64,000 nucleotides of DNA from Marsupella aquatica (Eukaryota > Plantae > Marchantiophyta), in assembly GCA_973895155.1 (NCBI GenBank), contig OZ316899.1:4591241-4655240 (forward strand), in the 5' to 3' direction. Positions within the stretch are counted from its first letter, which is position 1; every line of letters starts with the position of its first letter. The position numbers and the translations under genes were made by a program. This document shows positions 3,371 to 50,015 of this stretch, piece after piece. The notes under the pieces were generated by a model. The model saw only the letters and a program-made list of their open reading frames with translations, did no database searches and was not told the DNA's origin.

Positions 3371-3985
3371 CGAGTGAGGGCAAGATTTTGAGTGAGAGCA
3401 AGACTTTGAGTGAGGGCAAGATGCCGAGGTGAGAGCAAGATGCCGAGGTGAGGGCAAGATTTGGAGGTGAGGGAAAGATGTCGAGGTGAGGGCAAGATTT
3501 GGAAGTGAGGGCAAGATTTCAAGTGAGGGCAAGATGTCAACGTGAGGGCAAGATTTGGAGATGAGGGAACGATGTCAAGGTGAGGGAAAGATGTCGAGGT
3601 GAGGGACAGATGTCGAGGTGAGGGCAAGATTTGGAAGTGAGGGCAAGATTTCAAGTGAGGGCAAGATGTCAACGTGAGGGCAAGATTTGGAGATGAGGGA
3701 AAGATGTCAAGGTGAGGGAAAGATGTCGAGGTGAGGGAAAGATGTCGAGGTGAGGGCAAGATTTGGAAGTGAGGGCAAGATTTCAAGTGAGGGCAAGATG
3801 TCAACGTGAGGGCAAGATTTGGAGATGAGGGCAAGATTTCAAGTGAAGGCAAGATGTTGAGGTGAGGGCAAGATTTGGAGATGAGGGGCAAGATGTCAAA
3901 GTGAGAGCAAGATGTCGAGATGAGAGCAAGATGTCAAGATGAGAGCAACATGTGGAGGTGAAGGTAAGATTTTTGAGGCGAGGCA
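3371..3985. repeat. Minisatellite of 18-19 bp monomers (TGAGGGCAAGATNTNNAGG) with a ~132 bp higher-order unit, just inside the Helitron 3' end
   Basis: Direct inspection. The spurious ORF 3337-3891 repeats a 44-aa (132 nt) unit, SSPNLALTLTSCPHLKSCPHFQILPSPRHLSLTSTSFPHLDIFP, about three times. Confidence 0.95.
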
Positions 3986-4104
3986 AACATGGTTGTGCAT
4001 TGCAAACTATATTTCAGGCAAAAAGTCAAAGAGATTAATACAAAAGTGATACAATCTTTATTTAGGTGTTCAATAAAGAACCTCATCATATACAACATTT
4101 TTTG

Positions 4105-14314: not shown

Positions 14315-14657
14315 TGTTAGGTATTTACTCAAGGTCTAGGGTTACGACATGTAACTATAGTTAGGCTAACCATAGTCAAAGATGTGGTTAGGTTACCTAG
14401 GATGCACACTATATGCCAAGCGGTGTTTGCTTGGATAAGTGGAACTTAGGCTCAATGTTACGGAGCCACTTGAGAGATGAGGAGAGCTTCCACTATGGAG
14501 ACTTGGTATAGCCGACGGGCTTAGAGTTTAGTAAAGCTCTCTTGTGTGTTCCCGTGAACATAGCCTCGAGGAGGTGAACCACGTATCTCTTGTGTCGACT
14601 ACTTGCGCGTTGGATGTGTCATGTGCTTACCATTGTGATTGTCGTCTATGCTCAAAA
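14315..14657 (+). repeat. Copia 5' LTR (343 bp)
   Basis: Starts TGTTAGG and aligns along its length with 33447-33784 (TTACTCAAGGTCTAGGGTT...GTCTATGCTCAA). Confidence 0.93.
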
Positions 14658-18206: not shown

Positions 18207-18959
18207 CTTGGAGGGGAGAGCCTTTAGGGCCCTTGCCGGTGACGAGTGTATATTTGGGTTCTTTGGTGGTTTTTTCCTTTGTATTTTTTAGGGGTCCCCA
18301 CACTTTTGTGTGTTTATACACACACAAACGTGTGTATACACGCACGTTTACTCACCCCCAGCCCCATCGATCCGTTTTCCCCCCGCCACCCCGCCCTCCT
18401 TGCTGCCTACGCGCACCACGGACAGTTTCCCCCCCTCACATGCCCTTTGTTGCCCGCCAGCAAGCCTGCCACCCACAGGCTTTTGCTCCCCGTCCAGCGA
18501 TCCTCTTTGTGGCCGTGCTTTCTCGGCCGGTGCCTCCTGCCTGTACGCAACCGCCCGATATCCCACCCCGGCTATACGCCTGTTTTTTATAAAGGGGCTT
18601 TAACCCCCTTTAGGCCTTATTTTTATTTCTTTTCCTCCCTCTCCATTGGCTGCCGCATCTCGGGACCTGCCACCCTCCACTTTAATCGCTTGAACAGGGG
18701 GAACGGCCCCCTATGAGCCCTGCTGCTTTGTGCAAGAATATTCCCAAAAAATAGAGAGCATGTTTTTGCCCTTCGTCAAAGATTCCGTCCGCCAAATGGT
18801 AATTTTTTTCATTTGTCTTTGGCAAGGAGGTAGCCATCAGAGTTGGCCACATGGTGCACTAATCAAATTGCATTTTTGATGTCGGGTACTAATTCACATT
18901 TTGGTTATTCCCCAAGGTGGTCAAAATGGGGGAGAATTCACTAGTACATTTTGAGGCAT

Positions 18960-19375
18960 TTTACCGATTGTATTTCCATCGGACGCCTTCAGGAAATCCG
19001 ACGCAGAAATCTCACCTGTCCGATACCAAAAGAATCGCATTTTCCAATATACTTTGTATCGGAAAACAACAATCGAAAACCAATTGAAACTACCGATACC
19101 AAAACATTCGGGAGTTCCGTCCTCTAAACTGTCGGAAAACACTATGTCCGATGCCCGTTTAATCGGATGTCTGTTCCACGCATTTTTTGTTAATGGAGGC
19201 GTCCGATTCTAGACCGATATTCTGGACATGGAAATGCCCGATTGTTTTAACATCGGAAATGTCCGATTTTGTTTGGAATGGAAATTGCAATTATAGTAGA
19301 ATCAGACTTTGCGATACGTTTGGGATGGAAAAGTACGATGATTGTGGCATCGGATATGGATCGGTATCTATCGAA
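18960..19375. repeat. CACTA left subterminal repeats (ATCGGA/TCCGAT, both orientations)
   Basis: More than 15 ATCGG/CCGAT motifs in ~400 bp. Confidence 0.9.
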
Positions 19376-19732
19376 AAATATTTGGCGAGCTTGATTGGGC
19401 CTATTTTAAATGAGGGGCTAATTGGGGGTTTAATTGGGGTGCAATTTAATTCTTTAACTGAGTTTTTATCTAGGGTTTAGAGAGGTTATTTAGTCAAGAG
19501 AGACTATCAATTTTGATTGCACACTATGTACCTTGAAACCTGGGCATGACACGGCGTAACTATATCTTATATACAAAAATGAAATATCCAGGGCAAAAGT
19601 ACAAAAAATGGAGAACATCTCCATGCATAGTGCCAGCTATGCTAAAGGCTGGGCATATCAAATGGACATAATGCCCTCCAACTATCCACCTTGCTAGCCT
19701 GGTACTAGATCTATATATGTCTACCTAGTCCA

Positions 19733-22300
19733 CTATCCATACAAGCTATGTCGCGTCTTCCTCTTCTTCACACGGGAACGACTAGGCTGCTCTGCTCTAT
19801 GAGTCTCTACCGCTGACACCCTAGGTAGCACATCATGGTCGTGGCTACCTGATCTGTCTCCATCGTCATGTGGATGAGGTGCAGAAGCAATCTCTGGTAC
19901 TCCCCCACCTCCAGATGCGCCTGAATTGTCGCGAACCAGCTGGTACACTACCAGGGCCAGCCTAAACTGACAAGGTGCAACAACTCCACCACTACCCCCC
20001 TCAGGACGAGACTCACCTCCACCACTACGGCCGGAACCTCCAGACTGGATGCCTACACCACCACTATGAACAGGAGATGGTGTGGGCACATGACCACCAA
20101 GGCCTCCCCCGGACTGTCGTGAACCAGCTGGTACACTACCAGGGCCAGCCCTAAACTGACGAGGTGCAACAACTCCACCACTACCCCCTCAGGGCGAGAC
20201 TCACCTCCACCACTACGGCCGGAACCTCCTGACTGGCCAACGACACGACCAGTATGAACACCAGCCCGTTGTCGAGACCCACCTGGTACAACACCAGGGC
20301 CAGTCCTCACTCGACCACCTGCTGTGGCTAGAACTCCGGACTCACTTCAAACCCCTCGGTTGTGACCTACTGTGGCTGGAACCTGGGACTCACTCCGTCC
20401 ACTCCTACCGGCTAATCTCTGACAAGAAGGAGGCATATCACCTGCTCTATGCTCCATCCGGCGAGTGGAGCCACCTACACCCCGACCAGACTGGTGACGT
20501 CCACTCTCTCGGGGTCCTGACCGGCCACGCGCACCAGTAGAACCTCGTACTGGAGCCTCAGCCACACTCCCCTCTGAAGCACTATCATCCTCCGCATCCT
20601 CCTCGTCCTCCTCCCCCTCACCATCCTCCTCACTCTCCAAGTCCTCCTCACCCCCTGACTCATCCTGCACATAGTAAACAATCTCAAATCCATATGTCAT
20701 TCCGCAACATACGTACCAGCATGAAGCCATCTTTCAAATCATTCTAATATCCGCACTTACCGAGGCCAACATGTCGTCCATGTGAATCTTTAGCGCCCGA
20801 GCACCATGCTCCTTTGCCAGCTCTCTCTCTGCCGGCAACAATGGTTGTCCGTGCTCTCTCTCCTACACACCCAAACCATATGCCACCCCCAATACTAAGG
20901 TCAATTATAGCAACCCTACCCTGGCCTAATTAAACACCTATATAAACCCTTCACCGTCAAAGACCCATAAGAACACTTAGCCGTTCATGCACAAACTATT
21001 CAAAAATTTGAATATGTCCGATACTAGTAGAATCGGTACCCTCGACAGTTCCAATTCTTTTTTATTGTCCGATGCTGCATCCGATACTTAAAGGATCGGA
21101 CTAGAATCGGACCTTACATGCCAAAAGCAAAAAAAAACTAAGGCATGATTGAGCAACCTACGGGCATACAAAGACCTGTCCCGGGTTTGGCAGGGTTAGG
21201 CATTCGTCAATTGGCCTTAGGTGATTAGGGAGGAGGAATGCTGCTGAAGGAATGCATGGAGAGGAGGGGAATGGAGCACTTACAAAATCGGCCTTGAGAC
21301 GCTGTGATCCGCCTTGCCCCATTCTGTGAGTAACCTTTGGCCTCTTTGTTACTCTCAGCAGAGCTTTCATTAGCCAGGATGGTGGGTCTCCAAGCACGGC
21401 TGATTTTGCTGACCATTCTTCAAGTTCTTGATGCATGGGTGCAGTATTCACCATCTCTCCTTGTTTAATCTTCTTCTGAGCTGCTTGAATTTCAGCTTCC
21501 CAGCGTTGTGTGGCTTGCCAAGCTCGAACCTACAACTCTTCTTCAAGCCAAGCACACCAAGCATCCTCAGGAATCTCACCGGCTGGGCTTCCACCTTTCC
21601 TGATCACCTCCTCATCCAGTTTGCATTCAGCCAGGTACTTTTGCATCTTCTCTCGTACATGATTTTGCATGTCTACAAGTGAGACTAAGATCTTTTGTTT
21701 AAGAATCGATCGTCCACAAACGACCCATTCAAAAATCTCTCTTTGATTTGCTCTCGAATTCAAAATCTCTCATCCTGCTTCTTCTTCCCCCAGTAGTCCA
21801 TCAGGCCAAAATGAGACCTCACAATCTGCCTAACTTGACTCCCAAACAAACGATAACTCCTGGAGAGTGGAGCACCTCTCTCATTCAGAAACAATTTTGG
21901 CCTCTTGGCCCTATCCTCTGCCTTCTTTTGTTCCTCCTGAATTCTCTGTTGTTCTGCAGCCCGAGCCTCCCTCCTTAGGCTCTTCTCCTTTTGTCTTGGT
22001 GATAGGGCTTCCACTGGCCTCTCTCTCTCATCCTCCCTAGTGTTACGTTTCCTCTTCCTCTACAATCTCTCCTCCTCGAGTCTGGCTTGGAAAGCTTTTT
22101 CTGCATTAGTGATGGCTACCTTCTAGGAGCTGTCGATCAGTCCTTGAGTGAGCTGAGCTACCTGCAATGCAACCTCCGGCGAGAGCCCCACCTTCTCCCT
22201 AAACAATTGAGCCATGACTTCACCATAGCTGCTTGATGGCCCGGCACCATCTCCCATCCCTCCCGCATTCCCTTCCATCGCTACGAGCTCCGCAAAGGTA
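19733..22300 (-). pseudogene. CACTA second gene, TnpA/Transposase_24-like, multi-exon, divergent from TnpD
   Basis: Pieces 22014-21760 and 21763-21530 (GEIPEDAWCAWLEEEL) read through a TAG into 21454-21283 (KVTHRMGQGGSQRLKADF|GTAAGT donor). Next exon EREHGQPLLPAERELAKEH (~20870-20770), then an acidic, G/R-rich tail. The W...H-x-x-G-x-x-G pattern matches TnpA-like proteins. Confidence 0.6.
19936..20235. repeat. ~110 bp segment duplicated at ~190 bp spacing in the TnpA-like 3' exon
   Basis: CCAGCTGGTACACTACCAGGGCCAGCC...CACCACTACGGCCGGAACCTCC at ~19936 and ~20125, with a partial third copy at ~20281. Confidence 0.85.
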
Positions 22301-23343
22301 TCGTGAAATGCTCCCGATGCTTCTCTCGACTAGAGTGCCTTCGCACTTTAGTTGGGTGACCTAAAAACCCAAAGTGCATAATGTCCAATACTTTCTGCAT
22401 CGGAAACTCCGATTCTAGGTCAATCGGACTAAGTATCGGACCCCTCCTCCAAAGTATCGAACTTAACCCTCCCAATGTATTTTCTGATGGTTTGTGAATC
22501 GCATGACCTTGGCATTTGGACTTTGGCATTTGGATCCCATGTATACTATAATGTCCCCCTTTATGTTAGTTGGGGGTTAATTATGCTATATTGTGGGCTT
22601 ATTAGGTGTGCGATGCAAAACAGGCATATCAACGTATAGTTGTCGTGACAAAGCTAGCACACTATTTTTTGGTGGGTATGGATGATCATTGAATGTATGT
22701 ACCCAGATCTATTTTCAGTTTGATTTTAAATGATTCCCATTTTGACCATGAGGCAATGCTATATGCATGGTGCAACTTTTGGGGACTATAAGAAGTCACA
22801 AATTAAATTAACACTCTAGTGCCGTTTTGTGCAGTTTTGTATTTTTTGTTTTTGGAGGGTCGGGTCGTTGCTTTTCCTTGGTTTTCTTAGTAGGGTTTAT
22901 TTTTGCCAATGCATTATGCACAGCGAGAGTACGCGCATCCAAAAGGTATGACATATATGATCCTCCAAAATGTATTGAAAATATTTGACATGATATATGC
23001 GTTATTTGTGGGAGTTTATAATTGGACATCCAACTCGTCATTGATTTTTATTAATTTCAATAATTATTGGTTTGTTACTTAGGTTTGCATGTATGTCATC
23101 TCATCTTTCAACTTCCCCACCTACCCTGTATGTGCAGGTTTTTTTGGATTGGCCTTAGCATATAGTCTAAGGCTTAGAGCCTAGTAGGCACTATAGAGCT
23201 CGGATATCATTCAGGTACTAATTAAGTCCAACACTGCAAATTATTAACATACTATATATTTCCTGTTTGGGTTTACCTCAAGTTAGGGTGATGAATCAAT
23301 CTTGCATTTTGGTAAAGACTTGTTTGTGTGTAATTGGCAGACA

Positions 23344-23574
23344 ATGTCGACTTCTGAGAGTTTGGATATAGATTCCGACTCTGACTTGTCTTCCTCTGAG
23401 GGGGACATTCCTCCTCCCCCTCAACAGCCTCGAGCACCCCCTCCATTAGGCCCTATTCCATGCTGGTGTCTTAGATGTAAAGGACTGGTGGTTCATCAAG
23501 CGTGGCAGTCCATTGAACACATCGAAAACTATGGTCGACATGAGGGTGATTTACCAGGATATTCAGCTCGCCAG
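23344..23574 (+). CDS. First coding exon with CACTA transposase-associated zinc-finger (CxCxxC...H)
   Basis: Acceptor GGCAG|ACAATG at 23340 and ATG at 23344. Encodes PCWCLRCKGLVVHQAWQSIEHIENYG, resembling the TnpD N-terminal CPCxxC...HLxxxG motif. Donor CAG|GTATTG at 23574/23575, phase 0 (77 codons). Confidence 0.75.
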
Positions 23575-23684
23575 GTATTGCTTGACATGAACTCCGCTAT
23601 ATATGATACACTATCATAATAGTTGGCTGGTTTGAGACCTTTTAGGAGACAAGTATTAATTTTTGTTTGTTTATGATTGAATAG

Positions 23685-24647
23685 GTGCCTTGTAGGGCCC
23701 GTCCTCCATTGGTCTCTAGTCAACTATGGCATGATGCATTCCTAGCTGGTGCTAGACAGTTGCTTGCATCATCAATTGAAGACCCCGAGCAATCATTTAC
23801 CCCCGCACATGTTCAGGCAGATGTTGTTCATGAACCCATAGTGGTAGAGTTGGGGCATGGTAGGGATGATGCACCGCCCCCTACTAGGGTTCTACGCACA
23901 AGACCACGTTCTCATAGACATCGACAACAACATGTAGTTCTAGACACAGACCCATCCCATGAGCACTTTAGAAGGAGTGTTATGCCTCCACCAGGGGAGG
24001 AGTACATAGAAGTTGAAGGGAGGTTGGGCTTATCATATGTGACGGGAAAGGCAATTAGTGTCTTCAAGGATTTTGACCCTGAGAGTTTTGCGATTCCTCG
24101 TGGCCTAGCCATTGATATCCCTGTACATATATGGGGTCGGCAATGGATAGTGAAGGCATCGACCCTTGGCGGGAAGGTTGGATTAGGCTTATTTGCTTTG
24201 GAGGACATTGAGGTCCCTCCAAAGCCTTGGCGTCGTGGCTATGATGGGGAACACCTTTTCCCTTACATTGGGCCTGTGTATACATCCAAGAGTTGGAACA
24301 TCCTCTTGCGCCAACATCCAGCTTGGGGGGTATATGCATTGCAGATGGACTCAGACCCAGATGAGGTCCTAAGGAGGCCTTGGCATTGTAGGATGATTGA
24401 TGGGGACCCTGTGCGTTTAGATAACATAGTTGGGTACATCAATAGTACACATGGTAGAGGGAGTGGACTCCAGCCTAATGTAGAGTGGGCTCAGATTTTT
24501 GGCCCACCCACTCCGCCTTACTATGTCACACATATGGATGATCATGTTATGACAGTAGCCATACGGACCATTAGGGCGGGTGATGAGTTGTTTTGTGACT
24601 ATGAATGGAACGCACCCAAGATGGGCATTCGATCTGGCCACACTTAG
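23685..24647 (+). CDS. SET-domain protein exon (putative lysine methyltransferase) inside the CACTA
   Basis: Uninterrupted 320-codon frame after acceptor AATAG| (23684). SET motifs lie in order over 24144-24608: VKASTLGGKVGLGLFALEDI, LFPYIGPVY, YALQM, IDGDPVRLDNIVGYINST, PNVEW, VAIRTIRAGDELFCDY. Confidence 0.85.
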   Translation: MPCRARPPLVSSQLWHDAFLAGARQLLASSIEDPEQSFTPAHVQADVVHEPIVVELGHGRDDAPPPTRVLRTRPRSHRHRQQHVVLDTDPSHEHFRRSVMPPPGEEYIEVEGRLGLSYVTGKAISVFKDFDPESFAIPRGLAIDIPVHIWGRQWIVKASTLGGKVGLGLFALEDIEVPPKPWRRGYDGEHLFPYIGPVYTSKSWNILLRQHPAWGVYALQMDSDPDEVLRRPWHCRMIDGDPVRLDNIVGYINSTHGRGSGLQPNVEWAQIFGPPTPPYYVTHMDDHVMTVAIRTIRAGDELFCDYEWNAPKMGIRSGHT

Positions 24648-24755
24648 CACATATGTGTATTCCCCATTTTTGAAGTAATATAAGAATATTGTAGTTTTTT
24701 AGGAACCCATGGGCTAACTCAAACGTATATATCTGTTTTGTGCGTTGTATGATAG

Positions 24756-27700
24756 AATGCATATGTTGAGCCGGATGTTGGGGTGTTACCACGAGCTATG
24801 TGCCAACACCTTGTGCAGGCCATGGAAGATTGGCGACATGCCTCTCTACCACCAGATGGCAATCCGGATGTTCCAAAGCAGGAACCAGATGCCTCCCAAT
24901 CAAGAGTTGATGAAGATAGGGCCATGGATGACTTGATGCACCAATTCTATGACATAGAGGATGCTGATCATGACATGGCTGATGGGGAGAACATTGAGGT
25001 CCCACTTCCACATCAAGAAGGTTCAAGGAGTTCAGCCTCCAAACAGTGGGAGGAAGCACGTCAACATGCGCAAACTCGGATATTTGATGGATCACGCTTG
25101 TCTCATCTTTCAGCAATAATGTTGTTGTTGAACTTGCAGCAAAGACATGGAGCAAGCAACCTACTTCTTGATGATCTCTTTCGGACATTGCATGATTGTA
25201 TCTTGCCAGAAGGAAAAAACTTGCCAGACTCTTGGAAAGAGGCAAAGAAGGTGTTGAAGTCCATAGGTCTGCAGTACGAAGTCATACATGCTTGCGTGAA
25301 TGATTGCATTCTGTTTAGAGGCACTTATAAAGATGCAACGTCATGTCCTACATGTGAGAAGCCGAGGTATCGTGAGGACATGTTGACGGGAAAAGTTCCT
25401 CAGAAGGTCATGAGGTACTTTCCTCTTATACCTCGTTTGCGCCACCAATATAGATGTGCTGAGTTGGCTGAGTATATGGTTTGGCATTCCCAAAATCGCT
25501 CAGATATGAGTTCACAACCACCCACCATGCGCATGATGGTTGACTCCCCTGCAAACAAGTTTGTGGAGGAGAGATGGGGTGAGTTCCAAACTGACCCACG
25601 TCATGTTTGCCTAGGATTGGCAGCGGATGGCATCAGCCCATTTGCACTAGTAGGTAAGGCCCAACCATATTCACTATGGCCAGTGGTCCTTACTAATTAC
25701 AACATCCCTCCATGGATGTCCATGAAGAAGGGTCATTTGCTCCTTTCGATGATTATCCCTGGTCCTAAGCAAGTGAAACAATTGATGTGTACTTGCAACC
25801 ATTGATTGAGGAGCTACAAAAGCTTTGGAGGGGTGTGGATTGCTATGATGGTCGAGTGCAAATGGGGGGCTTACGTCAAGAATTTAAGTTGAAGGCCATT
25901 CTTATGTGGACCATACATGATCTTCCATGTATGAATCTTTGTTAAATTATCCCTTCCCATAGCTAGGCAACCGTAACTAGCATACTTTGTTATGTATTGA
26001 GTTAGCTAGGAGCACATATATCTTTTAATAAACTTATTTACTTATGCATGGGATATATATTTATATGCAGGGTTTGGATATATTTCTGGCCTGACCACAT
26101 CAGGATATCGAGCTTGCCCAACTTGTGGACCTGATTTGGAAGGAATAGCACGGCCAAAGTCAAAGACCTTGAGGAAGATAGTGTATATTGGTCACACCAA
26201 GTACCTCCCTCCAGACCATGATTGGAGGAGAGACCCCTGTTTATATGACACTGAGGATGGCCAACCAGATAGACGACCACAACCTATTCCAAAAGATCCT
26301 GCATATTGGAAAGAGGTATGGGAGAGAGTATCTAATCCAGATGACCCATTGCAGTATGCCCAGTGTGGCATGACTTGTTTGTTTGCATTGTCACAACTGC
26401 CTTATTGGGCTGAGATGCCACTTAACCATTTATTTGACCCTATGCACATTGAGGGAAATGTTGGGAGGTCCTTGATTCCCCACCTATATGGAGAGAAAGA
26501 CAACAACTGGAGAGAGAGTTGTGAACAGATGGGGATGCATGGACCTCATGGTTTTTGGCCATCTATGGATCCCAATAATGCCCCCCTTACTATTCATCCT
26601 CCTTGGGTTTTGACACGAGGTGAGCGGACCGAGTTTCGCAAACACATAGGGTCTATGCGATTTCCTACAGGGTATGGTGCCAATCTTTGCAAGGCATTTG
26701 GTGGACTTGACTCTCCAAAATGGCCAGCTTTCTTGAAGACCCATGATTATCATCGCTTATTGCAACATGTTATTCCAGTTGCTATTATTGGATTGGGTAG
26801 TGAGGATCTTTGTGATGCCCTTTGGTCGTTGGGTAAGTTGTTGAGATGGGTGTGTCAAAAGGAGGTGAACAAGGATGAGGTTGCAGCAATGGAGGTGTTT
26901 GGAGTGGAGGTTGTGTGCAAACTTGAAAGGGCCCTTCCTCCTTCATTTTTTGATGGTCAGGTTCATTTTCTACTACATCTAGTGCGTGAGGTTGGTATTG
27001 CAGGCCCTATACATTGTCGTTGGATGTACTGGGTAGAGCGGTACATGGGAGTGATGAAGTCCTATGTTTCAAATCGCGAAAGGGTGGAAGGTAGCATTGT
27101 TGAGCGTCATCTTGGAGCAGAGAGCATGTTTTATTGTACAAACATTATTGCTACACTTGATTCAAATGCTCCAAGGGGGTGGATAGATGAGGCATCAAGA
27201 GAAGCAGACTATAAGGATGACCGTTTGACAGGTGCAAAGGGAGAACGGCTTCTTGACCCTAGTGAGCGCACTAAACTCACTGCATTCATGTTGTATAACT
27301 CTCCAGAGATTGTTGGGGAGTGGACCACATTTTATGAGGAGGATAAGCACAATAGTCAACGACCACGCTTATTTCCCAAATTCCACATGTACATGAAGGG
27401 GAAGTTGTTAAAAGTGGATGCCTTGGTGGCTGCTGGGGAGAGTGTATCACACTTCCCAATGGTGACTGATAAGTTGTGCACCTTGGTTCATGGACCTCTA
27501 CTTACAGTTACAACCAGGACTGCCATGTGGTCCAAGGGGAGACACTTTCGTGTGGAACAACTTGATGACAAGAGGGCAGCTACACAAGATTGTGGGGTGA
27601 TGGGTTGGTTCACCCAGGATTCTGTAAGTAGCAGATCTCACACAAATCCCATCCGTTCTACTATAGCTCACTATGGAAAGATAGAGGAGATCCTTGTTGT

Positions 27701-28022
27701 AAAATACCATGCGCATACAACATTGGAAGAGATGGTGTTGAAGTGCAAATGGTTTTGGATGAACCTTGTTGGCCACAATCGGACATGTGAAGAGGATGCT
27801 TGCGGCTTCACACGACTGAAGACAGGGGCTGTCATCAGCTCAAATTGGAGGGCCTCAGATCCTTTTGCATTTCCTCATAATCTTGAGCAGGCATTCTATC
27901 TCCCTTATCCAGATGATCCTGAGTGGTCCATTGTAATGCCTTACATTCCTCAATCCCGATCCATAGTCCAAGAACAGCCAAATGTAACTATTGTGGAAGA
28001 TTTGGAAAATGAGAACAACTAG
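24756..28022 (+). pseudogene. tnpD: CACTA TnpD/TNP2 transposase (Transposase_21, DUF4218, DUF4216 regions), one frameshift
   Basis: IHACVNDCILFRG, KVMRYFPLIPRL, LGLAADGISPF, YSLWPVVLTNYNIPPW, IIPGPK, then a frameshift near 25780 into IDVYLQPLIEEL...LMWTIHDLP. Intron ~25929-26070. Then GYRACPTC, DPMHIEGNV, KTHDYH, PPSFFDGQVHFLLHLVRE, RWMYWVERYM, VEGSI, YGKIEEI and DPFAFP. Confidence 0.95.
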
Positions 28023-28312
28023 CTACTTAGGAATTTCATGGTAAAAGCTAGGTAGCTAGCACTAGCTAGACCTAATTAATGACCTCTTCCCTCCATGTAT
28101 TGATTTTTTCGGCATATATATGTTATCTACATTGTCATTACCAACTTTTTTGTTGCATGTTACTTTACTTATATATACCACTTAAATCTCTGGGCTCTAG
28201 CTGTGGCTATATATTTGTGCTTTTAATATATATGAAATGAAAGCTTCCAATTCATTTCAAATTGACCCTAGTTGAGTTCCCACATACTTCAAATGGAAAT
28301 GGAGTCAAAAAC

Positions 28313-28810
28313 CTATCGGAAACACAACATGCCTTAATTAGAAGCTAGCAAGATGATAAAACCCTCAAAAAACCCCGGCTCTACTGAAAACCGATATTTC
28401 CAATATTCAAAGAAACGGAACTCATGTGCCATACTACAGGTATCGGGAAACTTTGCCATTTTTACCACATCGGAACCAACGTCCATTTGTAATGGTTTCG
28501 GACAAAAGTCGGAACACATTTCCAATTCCACAAATATCGGAAACTTTTTGTCCCTCAGTTCATCTGAACCAACATGCAATATTTTCTTTATCGGATGCCT
28601 CTTGCGTCGCGGCAATCTCACTGTCCGATGCAGGTAGAATGGGAAAGGCTCCGATAGTTTTTAAATGGGAAACTATTTCCGATTCTAGTAGTATGGGACA
28701 GCATGTGTCCGATGTAGAATGTATGGTAAATCCCCGATGCGGAGACAATCGGAGAGTACCAATCTTCTCTGTATCGGAAAGTGTTGTCGACCGAAAGAAG
28801 AGCATCGGAA
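28313..28810. repeat. CACTA right subterminal repeats (ATCGGA/TCCGAT)
   Basis: More than 12 ATCGG/CCGAT motifs in ~500 bp. Confidence 0.9.
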
Positions 28811-29060
28811 AAACCCAAAATATGTACCAGTGATTCCAAATTTTACCCACCCGACCAAAAAAATGAATAAGTTTTACGTTGGAGTTTTGGTTTTGATTCT
28901 AGTTTTCAACGTTGGAGAGCTAGGCTTGTGGGCTACGCGGCAATGATAAGTTTTGAGTTTTTTTGAAGAAGTTGAGAAAACGTCATTTTTTCTTGCATTC
29001 TCACATGAGTCATTCGGAGGAGATTTTTGAAGATGTGGAGCTTGAAGCACGAAGATCACC

Positions 29061-33446: not shown

Positions 33447-33784
33447 TCTTATTACTCAAGGTCTAGGGTTATGACATGTAACTATAGTTAGGCTAACCGT
33501 AGTCGGAGACGTGGTTAGGTGAACTACGATGCACACTATATGCCAAACAATGTTTGCTTGGATAAGTGGAACTTAGGCTCATTGTTACGGAGCCACTTGA
33601 GAGATGAGGAGAACTTACACTGTGGAAACTTGGTATAGCCGACGGGCTTAGAGTTCAGTAAAGCTCTCTTGTGTGTTCCCGTGGACGTAGCCTCAAGGAG
33701 GTGAACCACGTATCTCTTGTGTCGACTATTTGTGCGTTGGATGTGTCATGTGCTTACCGTTGTGATTATTGTCTATGCTCAAGA
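33447..33784 (+). repeat. Copia 3' LTR (338 bp)
   Basis: Aligns with 14315-14657 and is followed by the TSD ATTCC. Confidence 0.93.
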
Positions 33785-44199: not shown

Positions 44200-45460
44200 A
44201 CTATCTAGGCCTTCAGGAAGCACTGTTGAATCCTTGTCAAGTGAAGTCTGGCATGAGAAACGAGTTGAGTCCTTGGCAAAGTACTATCTAGTTAATCACT
44301 AAGGACTATATAGTCCTTGACTCAGGAGTATGGATAGCAGTGAAGTCCTTAGTCAATTGAAGTACTTTACTCCTTGGATAAAAACTATACTCCTTAGCCA
44401 AGGGCTTCACTAAGCGTCAAGGACTATATAGTCCTTAGCCAAGGACTCTACTCCTTTGCCCAGGACTATATAGTCCTTATCAAAGGACTTTACTACTTTG
44501 TAAAGGACTATAGTCCTTTCTGAAGGACTTTACTACTTTGTAAAGGACTATAGTCCTTTCTGAAGGACTTTACTACTTTGTAAAGGACTTCAGTCCTTTC
44601 TAAAGGACTTCACTCCTTTGTGAAGGACTATTAATAGTCCTTACTCGAGGACTTTACTACTTTGTAAAGGACTATAGTCCTTACTCAAGGACTTTACTAC
44701 TTTGTAAAGAACTATAGTCCTTTCTCAAGGACTTTACTCCTTTGTGAAGGACTATTAATAGTCCTTACTAAAGGACTTTACTACTTGGTAAAGGACTGTA
44801 GTCCTTACTCAAGGACTTTACTACTTTGTAAAGGAATATAGTCCTTTCTCAAGGACTTTACTCCTTTGTGAAGGATTATTAATTAATAGTCCTTCCCCAA
44901 GGACTTTACTCCTTCCCCAAGGACTTTACTCCTTTGTAAAGGACTATAGTCCTTTCTCAAGGACTTTACTCCTTTTAAAAGGACTACTAATAGTCCTTGG
45001 ACTTTACTCCTTGGTACGGGCCTTTGTAACGGACTATAGTCCTTACTCAAGTGTTTACTCCTTTGTAAAGGACTATAGTACTTACTTAAGGACTTTACTC
45101 CTTTGTAAAGGACTATAGTCTTTATTCAAGGATTGTAGTCCTTATTGAAGTACTTTGCTCCTTTGTTTAGGACTTTAGCCCTTGTGTAAGGATTGTAGTC
45201 CTTATTGAAGTACTTTACTCCTTTGTCGAGGACTGTCTTTAGTCCTCATCCGAGGACTAAGTAGTCCTTCGATAAGGACTTTAATCCTCTGTCAAGGACT
45301 ATAGTCCTGGGTTGTGTTACATCTATAGACTAGTCCTTTGTCAACGAGTGAAGCGCTTTGACCAAATGATTGTAGTACTCCTCCCCGATGAACTTTAGTC
45401 CTTAAGCTTTGCTGGTAGTCTTCCAATGAGGATTCCAACCCTTACTGAAGGACTTCAGTC
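44200..45460. repeat. Intronic array of palindromic motifs (AAGGACTATAGTCCTT / AAGGACTTTACTCCTTT)
   Basis: Dozens of GGACT and AGTCC/ACTCC half-sites with ~17-19 bp spacing and ~35-75 bp higher-order units. Confidence 0.92.
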
Positions 45461-49564: not shown

Positions 49565-50015
49565 CTTGCACTTTCTCACTCCACAGACTTTTGCAAGGAT
49601 TTCTCAAGTCCTTGGTAAATCCTTAGAGTCCTTACCAAAGGACTTAGCCAAGGACTTAGTGTTCTTGTCAACGGACTAAGTGTCCTTGCCCAAGGACTCC
49701 AGTCCTTTCCCAAGGACTCCCTATCCTTGACCAAGGACTCCCTATCCTTTCCCAAGGACTCAGTGTCCTTGACGGACTCCCTATCCTTTCCCAAGGACTC
49801 CGTGTTCTTTCCCAATGACTACTAGTCCTTTCCCAAGGATTCTGCCCAAGGACTCCAAGTCCTAGTCATGGCCGAAGGACTCCCAATCGTTGCCCCACGA
49901 CTCCAATAAGGACTTCAAGTGCTTATGAAGGACTTCAAGTGCTTATGAAGGACTTCAAGTGCTCAAGCGAGAACTGAAAGTCCTTAAGAAGGACTTGAAC
50001 TCCTTGGCCCTTGTT
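49565..50015. repeat. Second GGACT/AGTCC motif array (CCAAGGACTCCCTATCCTT; AAGGACTTCAAGTGCTTATG x3), in a predicted intron
   Basis: Lies between a minus-strand donor CAG|GTAACT (~50110) and an acceptor at ~49495. Confidence 0.88.

Follow-up and report, generated by a model that had tools for sequence, protein, structure and literature searches.

A SET exon in the first intron of a bryophyte CACTA transposase gene and a candidate alternative splice of its zinc-finger exon

In the maize transposon En/Spm, the proteins TnpA and TnpD are produced from one precursor by alternative splicing. In the 66-kDa repressor of the P element and in truncated-transposase inhibitors, alternative processing keeps the N-terminal DNA-binding domain of the transposase. 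The primate gene SETMAR, a domesticated host gene, fuses a SET domain and the Hsmar1 mariner transposase in one polypeptide. Here we describe a complete 9.9-kb element of the CACTA (En/Spm) superfamily in a 64,000-nt stretch of the liverwort Marsupella aquatica (assembly GCA_973895155.1, contig OZ316899.1, positions 4,591,241 to 4,655,240 of the forward strand). This whole stretch is called the window below, and all coordinates are positions within it. In the element, an exon with a SET domain lies between a zinc-finger exon and the exons of a TnpD-type transposase. On sequence grounds we consider it probable, at roughly 65%, that a zinc finger-SET protein (ZnF-SET) and a zinc finger-transposase are both made from the shared first exon by alternative splicing.

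A sequence-only reading of the window had drawn the parallel with En/Spm. The parallel holds for the superfamily, and one promoter and a shared first exon for two element proteins are proposed here as well, but beyond this the analogy is loose. In En/Spm, TnpD is paired with TnpA, a DNA-binding protein whose coding sequence is downstream, and the first intron of TnpA contains TnpD. Here a SET protein takes the place of TnpA and is nested in the first intron of TnpD. The shared exon of En/Spm is a leader, while here it is a coding zinc finger, and the second gene of the present element stands on the opposite strand. The P element is similar in that an N-terminal DNA-binding domain is kept in a second protein, which is the role proposed for ZnF-SET. 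Its repressors, however, are truncated transposases, whereas the alternative C-terminus found here is a separate domain, predicted to be enzyme-like. As in SETMAR, SET and transposase would be brought into one locus by splicing, but in the present case the SET exon ends with a stop codon, the products are alternatives to each other and the element retains its terminal inverted repeats (TIRs) and target-site duplication (TSD).

Other DNA transposons also carry SET domains. HarbingerS elements do so (Kojima and Jurka 2014, cited in PMC12730594), SET has been captured by Helitrons (PMC12730594; bioRxiv 10.1101/2025.02.11.637652), and PAG2, which combines a DNA methylase with SET, occurs in red-algal Plavaka/EnSpm elements (bioRxiv 10.1101/2025.02.11.637652). 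In these cases SET is a stable accessory of a DNA transposon, as it is here, and Plavaka also belongs to the EnSpm superfamily. There SET is described as a separate accessory gene, whereas in the present element it is an exon inside the transposase gene, where it appears to share the transposase's first coding exon; the hosts are bryophytes and the SET domain is very divergent. The VANC proteins of VANDAL elements in Arabidopsis are anti-silencing proteins (Hosaka et al. 2017, cited in PMC12730594). VANC resembles what ZnF-SET may be, an element-encoded protein believed to target its own family's chromatin by binding specific sequences, but it is a non-SET protein encoded by a separate gene of a Mutator-like element. 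A bryophyte CACTA element with a SET exon in the first intron of its transposase gene, apparently sharing the zinc-finger exon and kept across mosses and liverworts, was not found in the literature searched.

The unit lies on the plus strand. Exon 1 (23344..23574) begins with the ATG at 23344-46 and comprises 231 nt, or 77 codons, which encode after the initial Met an acidic and Ser-rich part, a Pro-rich part and a zinc finger of the form CxCxxC...H. It ends at a phase-0 donor, CAG|GTATTG, at 23574|23575; read unspliced, its frame reaches a stop within intron 1 (open reading frame (ORF) 23302-23619). Intron 1 (23575..23684, 110 nt, GT...AATAG) is followed by the first of two acceptors, AATAG|GTG at 23684|23685, which opens an ORF of 320 codons. 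This SET exon (23685..24647) encodes a linker of about 100 amino acids (aa) with the basic stretch RVLRTRPRS, then the SET domain, and closes with its own TAG at 24645-47. After a spacer of 108 nt (24648..24755) the second acceptor, TGATAG|AAT at 24755|24756, opens TnpD exon 2 (24756..25928), whose translation starts NAYVEPDVGVLPRAM. At each acceptor the exon opens with the codon that directly follows an in-frame stop. Exon 2 encodes Transposase_21 apart from its end and closes at the donor CCAT|GTATGA. The following intron of 142 nt (25929..26070, GTATGA...TATGCAG) was assigned by reading the sequence, and the homology frames agree with it. Exon 3 (26071..28022), open to its stop, holds the end of Transposase_21, DUF4218 and DUF4216, and is 77-80% identical to its counterpart in the liverwort Calypogeia fissa (locus L001). 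Pfam recognised Transposase_21 with an E-value of 1.1e-22, DUF4218 with 7.4e-29 and DUF4216 with 6.1e-5. SET and transposase do not form one polypeptide: the SET frame is closed by its TAG and further stops follow up to 24756, and the same is true of all relatives. The sequence-only reading had given the same start codon and donor for exon 1, exact to the base, and its two phase-0, in-frame acceptors and its SET stop at 24647 are likewise confirmed. The 108-nt spacer contains several GT sites. A mini-exon with a start codon in this spacer was considered and rejected, as both ATGs run into stops without an in-phase GT.

We propose that the transposase gene would have three coding exons, with the finger supplied by exon 1 and Transposase_21, DUF4218 and DUF4216 by exons 2 and 3. 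The SET exon, additional to these three and provided with a separate acceptor and stop, would lie within the first intron of 1.18 kb. One promoter upstream of 23344 would then give rise to two proteins with a common N-terminal finger. Splicing from 23574 to 23685 would yield a ZnF-SET protein of about 397 aa, and splicing from 23574 to 24756 a transposase of about 1118 aa in intact copies. Both junctions would be used in vivo, and the choice between them would be made by competition of the two acceptors, which may work through a poly(A) site in the 108-nt spacer or through a cassette-type SET exon whose donor would lie just behind its stop.

DNA of relatives was fetched around homologues of the SET exon and around matches to an exon 1 profile, which gave about ten diverged relatives, among them Calypogeia, Riccia, Sphagnum and six contig lineages. 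The loci compared were L001 of C. fissa, L002-L004, L009 and L010 (Logan/JGI contigs), L005 and L006 (ENA), L007 and L008 of Riccia sorocarpa, L012 and L013 of Sphagnum jensenii, and L014, L015/L016 and L017. A scan of metagenome contigs with the exon 1 alignment produced 271 pattern matches, of which 0 were confirmed. Every fetched locus with enough flanking DNA shows the order zinc-finger exon, SET exon, Transposase_21 exon. The donor of exon 1 is in phase 0 in every lineage, reading CAG|GTA in the window, L001, L002, L005 and L006, and GTG|GTAAGT in Sphagnum. In an alignment of 28 exon 1 homologues, the codon that follows exon 1 specifies Val (GTN) in all 18 of the 18 unspliced ORF calls, and from there on divergence is complete. 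At the opening of the SET frame the window, L001, L002, L012, L014, L015 and L017 have acceptor 1 as (A/T)ATAG|G. Acceptor 2 reads ATAG|AA(T/C) in the window, L001, L002 and L012, with the variants TGTAG|GAT in L015, GAAG|GAT in L014 and GCAG|TTT in L005. Conservation of both acceptors across related species had been named earlier as a check on the proposed splicing, and both were found at the same position and in phase 0 in every lineage read, at the opening of the frame in every case except acceptor 2 of L014. The introns are mutually unrelated, while the donor and the two acceptors keep their codon position, a pattern beyond what chance would give. The spacers, 108-225 nt long in the intact relatives compared, have no similarity to one another. 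The three coding parts diverge together. Identity to the window (finger/SET/TnpD) falls from 84/68/68% for L001 to 33/46/53% for Sphagnum, with the same rank order in all three, as expected under joint inheritance.

The start of the TnpD exon carries further information. The conserved part of the protein starts with the codon right behind acceptor 2 and opens with (N/D)xFV(E/Q)P(D/N)..LPR, and this stretch is better conserved than the approximately 35 residues that follow. L002 has Ile in place of the internal Met at position 15 of the exon, and the lineages do not share any Met position. Since conservation runs from acceptor 2 and a conserved start codon is missing, the TnpD exon would need an upstream coding exon that ends in phase 0. 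The architecture as a whole has been kept in a CACTA lineage of mosses and liverworts, consistent with an old origin. In Calypogeia the finger exon was seen in two subfamilies, one like that of the window (P0001) and one nearer the Sphagnum type (P0028, ...GASSSHVGSS...), so that several element lineages coexist in one genome.

The finger of exon 1 can be assigned to a family. The CxCxxC...H motif that had been noticed in the window is supported by the 28 family members, in which C40, C42, C45 and H59 are invariant or nearly so. The only Pfam family that recurred was PF13963, the Transposase-associated domain, matched below its cut-off by 10 of the 28 at profile positions of about 30-61. In a model calculated with AlphaFold2 (AF2) from the 28-sequence alignment, residues 37-66 form a hairpin followed by a helix, with a predicted local distance difference test score (pLDDT) of about 90. 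When this model was compared with 2.3 million AFDB clusters in Foldseek, at least 20 of the top 30 matches were named Transposase-associated domain proteins. The alignments fall on residues of about 35-70 of these proteins and have probabilities of 0.9-1.0; some of the proteins are transposases of 878-1145 aa. So short a domain yields weak E-values for single matches (0.07-0.5), yet the enrichment is plain. A search of the ESM Atlas with exon 1 gave generic zinc-finger clusters only, with scores up to 0.66, and was uninformative. The Transposase-associated zinc finger normally heads the TnpD proteins of CACTA elements, and Pfam does not report it in TnpD exons 2-3 of the window. Judged by the modelled fold, exon 1 is this finger, the normal head of a CACTA transposase, which places the SET exon formally inside the transposase's first intron.

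The second exon is recognised as SET by Pfam (28.2 bits against a cut-off of 22.4, E 2.6e-6). Among 5.8 billion proteins 15 homologues were found, all of them in bryophytes or in contigs, the best being a protein of 344 aa from C. fissa with 58% identity. A sequence search of the PDB with the SET profile returned only matches with E of 0.09 or higher, located on the C-terminal motif, and a fold search was needed. With an AF2 model of limited confidence (pLDDT only 68), Foldseek retrieved from the PDB MLL1, MLL3, SETD8, EZH2, NSD1 and vSET, with E-values from 6e-5 and target-normalised template-modelling scores up to about 0.6; by these matches the fold is that of SET. The exon contains GLGLFA, corresponding to the GxG motif, and a final DY, of which the Tyr is invariant. 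From liverworts to Sphagnum, GxG, LFPYxGxxY, IDGDPxR, PN(V/C)EW and the final Tyr have been kept, and this pattern makes long-term selection on the very divergent SET domain evident. The NHxC motif, by contrast with the canonical form, reads (Y/F)INS in 10 of 10 sequences, followed by an insertion and then PN. His is thus replaced by Ser, and activity of the domain cannot be assumed.

The earlier prediction comprised two products, and the gene models of relatives bear on them unequally. ZnF-SET is present in several. In Calypogeia P0001 the last residues of exon 1 (...HIENYGRHEGDQPGYSAQQ) run straight on into those of the SET exon (VPHRP...), with an equivalent intron of 122 nt spliced out, and the models P0047 of S. 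jensenii (344 aa) and P0052 of S. fallax also join the finger to the SET exon. In R. sorocarpa, finger, linker and SET form one ORF of 490 codons without an intron (L007:10368-11840). This ORF is independent of gene models, as residues 12-501 of P0045 map to the DNA as a single high-scoring segment pair of 490 aa. For the other product, no gene model was found that joins exon 1 directly to the TnpD exon. The Riccia model P0043, however, uses a donor inside the finger-linker-SET ORF and an acceptor beyond the SET stop to reach the TnpD N-terminal exon, which, as modelled, is the same either/or logic in a different intron layout. The further suggestion that SET is built in and is not passive cargo is borne out in so far as each lineage fetched has SET placed between the finger and the transposase, and the divergence of SET keeps pace with theirs. 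The comparison thus indicates that SET is clearly built into the lineage of the element rather than carried along.

Several observations weigh against the production of two proteins from the shared exon. Of five sequencing runs of unspecified kind, four had contigs that cross intron 1 unspliced, and none of these four showed a joint at 23574; their depth was similar over introns, spacer and exons. Given the unspliced contigs and the even depth, the four runs behave as genomic DNA. A run search limited to RNA-labelled libraries listed none. The exon 1 profile, searched against 1.84 billion representatives, gave 30 matches, most of them short unspliced ORF calls, and none combined the finger with a full transposase. 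A search with the N-terminus of the TnpD exon gave only three proteins, all starting at an internal Met. The gene models that join finger and SET may be ab initio predictions. The best score of exon 1 against PF13963 is 19.5 bits (E 0.0011), below the cut-off of 27.7, and the window's own exon gives no match. Catalysis by the SET domain, as predicted from its sequence, is uncertain. On the same side stand the gene models and start codons that place the beginning of TnpD elsewhere, and the condition of the window's own transposase; each of these suggests an alternative of its own.

According to the first of these alternatives there are two transcription units, one consisting of exon 1 and SET, the other of TnpD expressed from its own promoter in or near the spacer and translated from its first Met (Met 15), the splice geometry being a relic. 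The Calypogeia annotation indeed has TnpD as a separate gene that begins at an internal Met (P0061, MRQHLVEA). Some Met is found within the first 25 or so codons of the TnpD exon in every lineage, in L014 an ATG lies in frame two codons ahead of the conserved motif, and a ZnF-TnpD protein was not found in the databases searched. Yet the position of the Met is unconserved, with the residue at 15 replaced in L002 as mentioned and a Met lacking at 22 in L001, and the 14 residues ahead of Met 15 are better conserved than the rest of the first 60 in the exon. The AG behind the in-frame stops is the exact point where conservation sets in, and every lineage read has acceptor 2 in phase 0. Moreover, such a transposase would be without the canonical Transposase-associated finger, which exon 1 is on the modelled fold. 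We therefore regard two separate units as unlikely.

A second alternative retains exon 1 at the head of the transposase but adds to it a part of the SET linker, with an internal donor that is spliced to the TnpD exon. The single finger-linker-SET ORF of Riccia, inside which the donor of P0043 lies, fits this arrangement, as do Calypogeia P0033, which joins exon 1, linker and TnpD N-terminus, and Sphagnum balticum P0050, which joins the inside of SET to TnpD. Phase-0 conserved Val codons do occur in the SET exon of the window, L001 and L002, but their context as donors is poor (AGG|GTTCTA is one example), and a search of the SET exon in these three revealed no internal donor that is both strong and conserved. 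P0033 and P0050 may represent deleted copies or prediction artefacts, as deletion derivatives exist at the DNA level (24234-25098, see below), while the donor of exon 1 is perfectly conserved. An internal donor in the linker is accordingly an improbable source of the transposase mRNA.

The third alternative concerns the present state of the family. In the window copy one base has been lost at about 25775-25784, inside Transposase_21, where homology shifts from frame +3 to frame +2. Because of this frameshift the ORF from 24756 stops at the TGA at 25803-05, and any ZnF-transposase from this copy would be truncated. Some copies of the family, as represented in DNA runs, have one extra base after 25775. 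The window copy thus has an intact ZnF-SET frame over 397 codons and a transposase broken by one lesion, and it could be mobile only with transposase from another copy. In contigs of three DNA runs, 24234 is joined to 25098 with 15 other letters between; this joint marks a deletion-derivative subfamily in which SET has lost its C-terminal half and the TnpD exon its beginning. The frameshift, the deletion derivatives and the RNA run search that turned up none would all agree with a fossil architecture, in which the family is silenced or dead here, neither product is made now and the layout reflects past function. Against this, the ZnF-SET frame is intact, the TnpD lesion is single and the TSD is perfect; the frame is unbroken at 25775 in part of the family, and L014 and L015 contain intact ORFs. 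A fossil would in any case concern present activity and not the construction of the gene, and we give it little credence.

If the shared-exon reading holds, the common finger would bring SET to the DNA that the transposase recognises. SET may then act as a regulator encoded by the element, by marking the chromatin of the element, by methylating a protein of transposition or by competing for binding sites. That ZnF-SET is in this way a self-targeted regulator of chromatin or transposition, sent by the finger to the element ends or to the transposition complex, is a tentative proposal that we hold with considerable reserve. If true, the ratio of the splice forms would decide whether the element is marked or moves.

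The host of this unit is a complete CACTA element of 9.9 kb at 18939-28832. In a search for paired ends of the form CACT...AGTG, 18939 and 28832 were one good pair, the best in the search. The element is flanked by the TSD ATT at 18936..18938, repeated identically at 28833-28835. Its left TIR, CACTAGTACATTTTG (18939..18963, plus strand), agrees in 18 of 25 bases with the reverse complement of the right end. The subterminal repeats consist of ATCGGA/TCCGAT motifs, with 9 in the 462 nt of the left region (18939..19400) and 11 in the 533 nt of the right region (28300..28832), which includes the right TIR (reverse complement CACTGGTACATATTT). Elsewhere the motif occurs 10 times in the 8.9-kb interior of the element and 10 times in the other 54 kb of the window. 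TIRs, a 3-bp TSD, subterminal arrays and a TnpD-type transposase are thus all present, as in the CACTA (En/Spm) superfamily.

The left half of the element is occupied by a second gene of several exons on the minus strand (19994..22272). In translated comparison (tblastx) it is colinear, at 44-54% identity, with a C. fissa gene model of 532 aa (L001:6473-8530), and minus-strand genes adjoining the Riccia and Sphagnum copies are likewise colinear with it. Pfam assigned no family to the ORF pieces of this gene. The element therefore consists of two divergent transcription units, with the ZnF/SET/TnpD unit as the right-hand one.

Other repeats were observed in the window. A direct repeat of 300 nt, 93% identical, is present at 14325-14624 and 33452-33751, 19 kb apart, on either side of the CACTA element; the two may be the long terminal repeats of a retrotransposon that was hit by the CACTA element, or two copies of some other repeat. 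A tandem array at 3391-3990 has a 19-nt unit resembling GGGCAAGATGTCGAGGTGA in about 30 copies. Dense 20-21-nt repeats of the AAGGACT type, in both orientations, are found at 44400-45310 and 49640-49925, and these arrays look like the subterminal repeats of another DNA transposon.

The comparison also matters for annotation, as the loci in Calypogeia, Sphagnum and Riccia are at present called host genes of the 'SET domain-containing' type, treated as unrelated, and fragments of transposase genes. Bryophytes silence transposable elements with a mix of marks unlike that of flowering plants. To our knowledge, transposons that carry chromatin enzymes are rare, and the targeting of such enzymes is mostly unknown. 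The layout of the gene described here suggests an answer to the question of targeting, namely that alternative splicing would provide an enzyme-like domain with the finger by which the transposase binds DNA. Should transcripts bear this out, the family would be a natural example, open to testing, of a mobile element writing or disturbing marks on its own copies.

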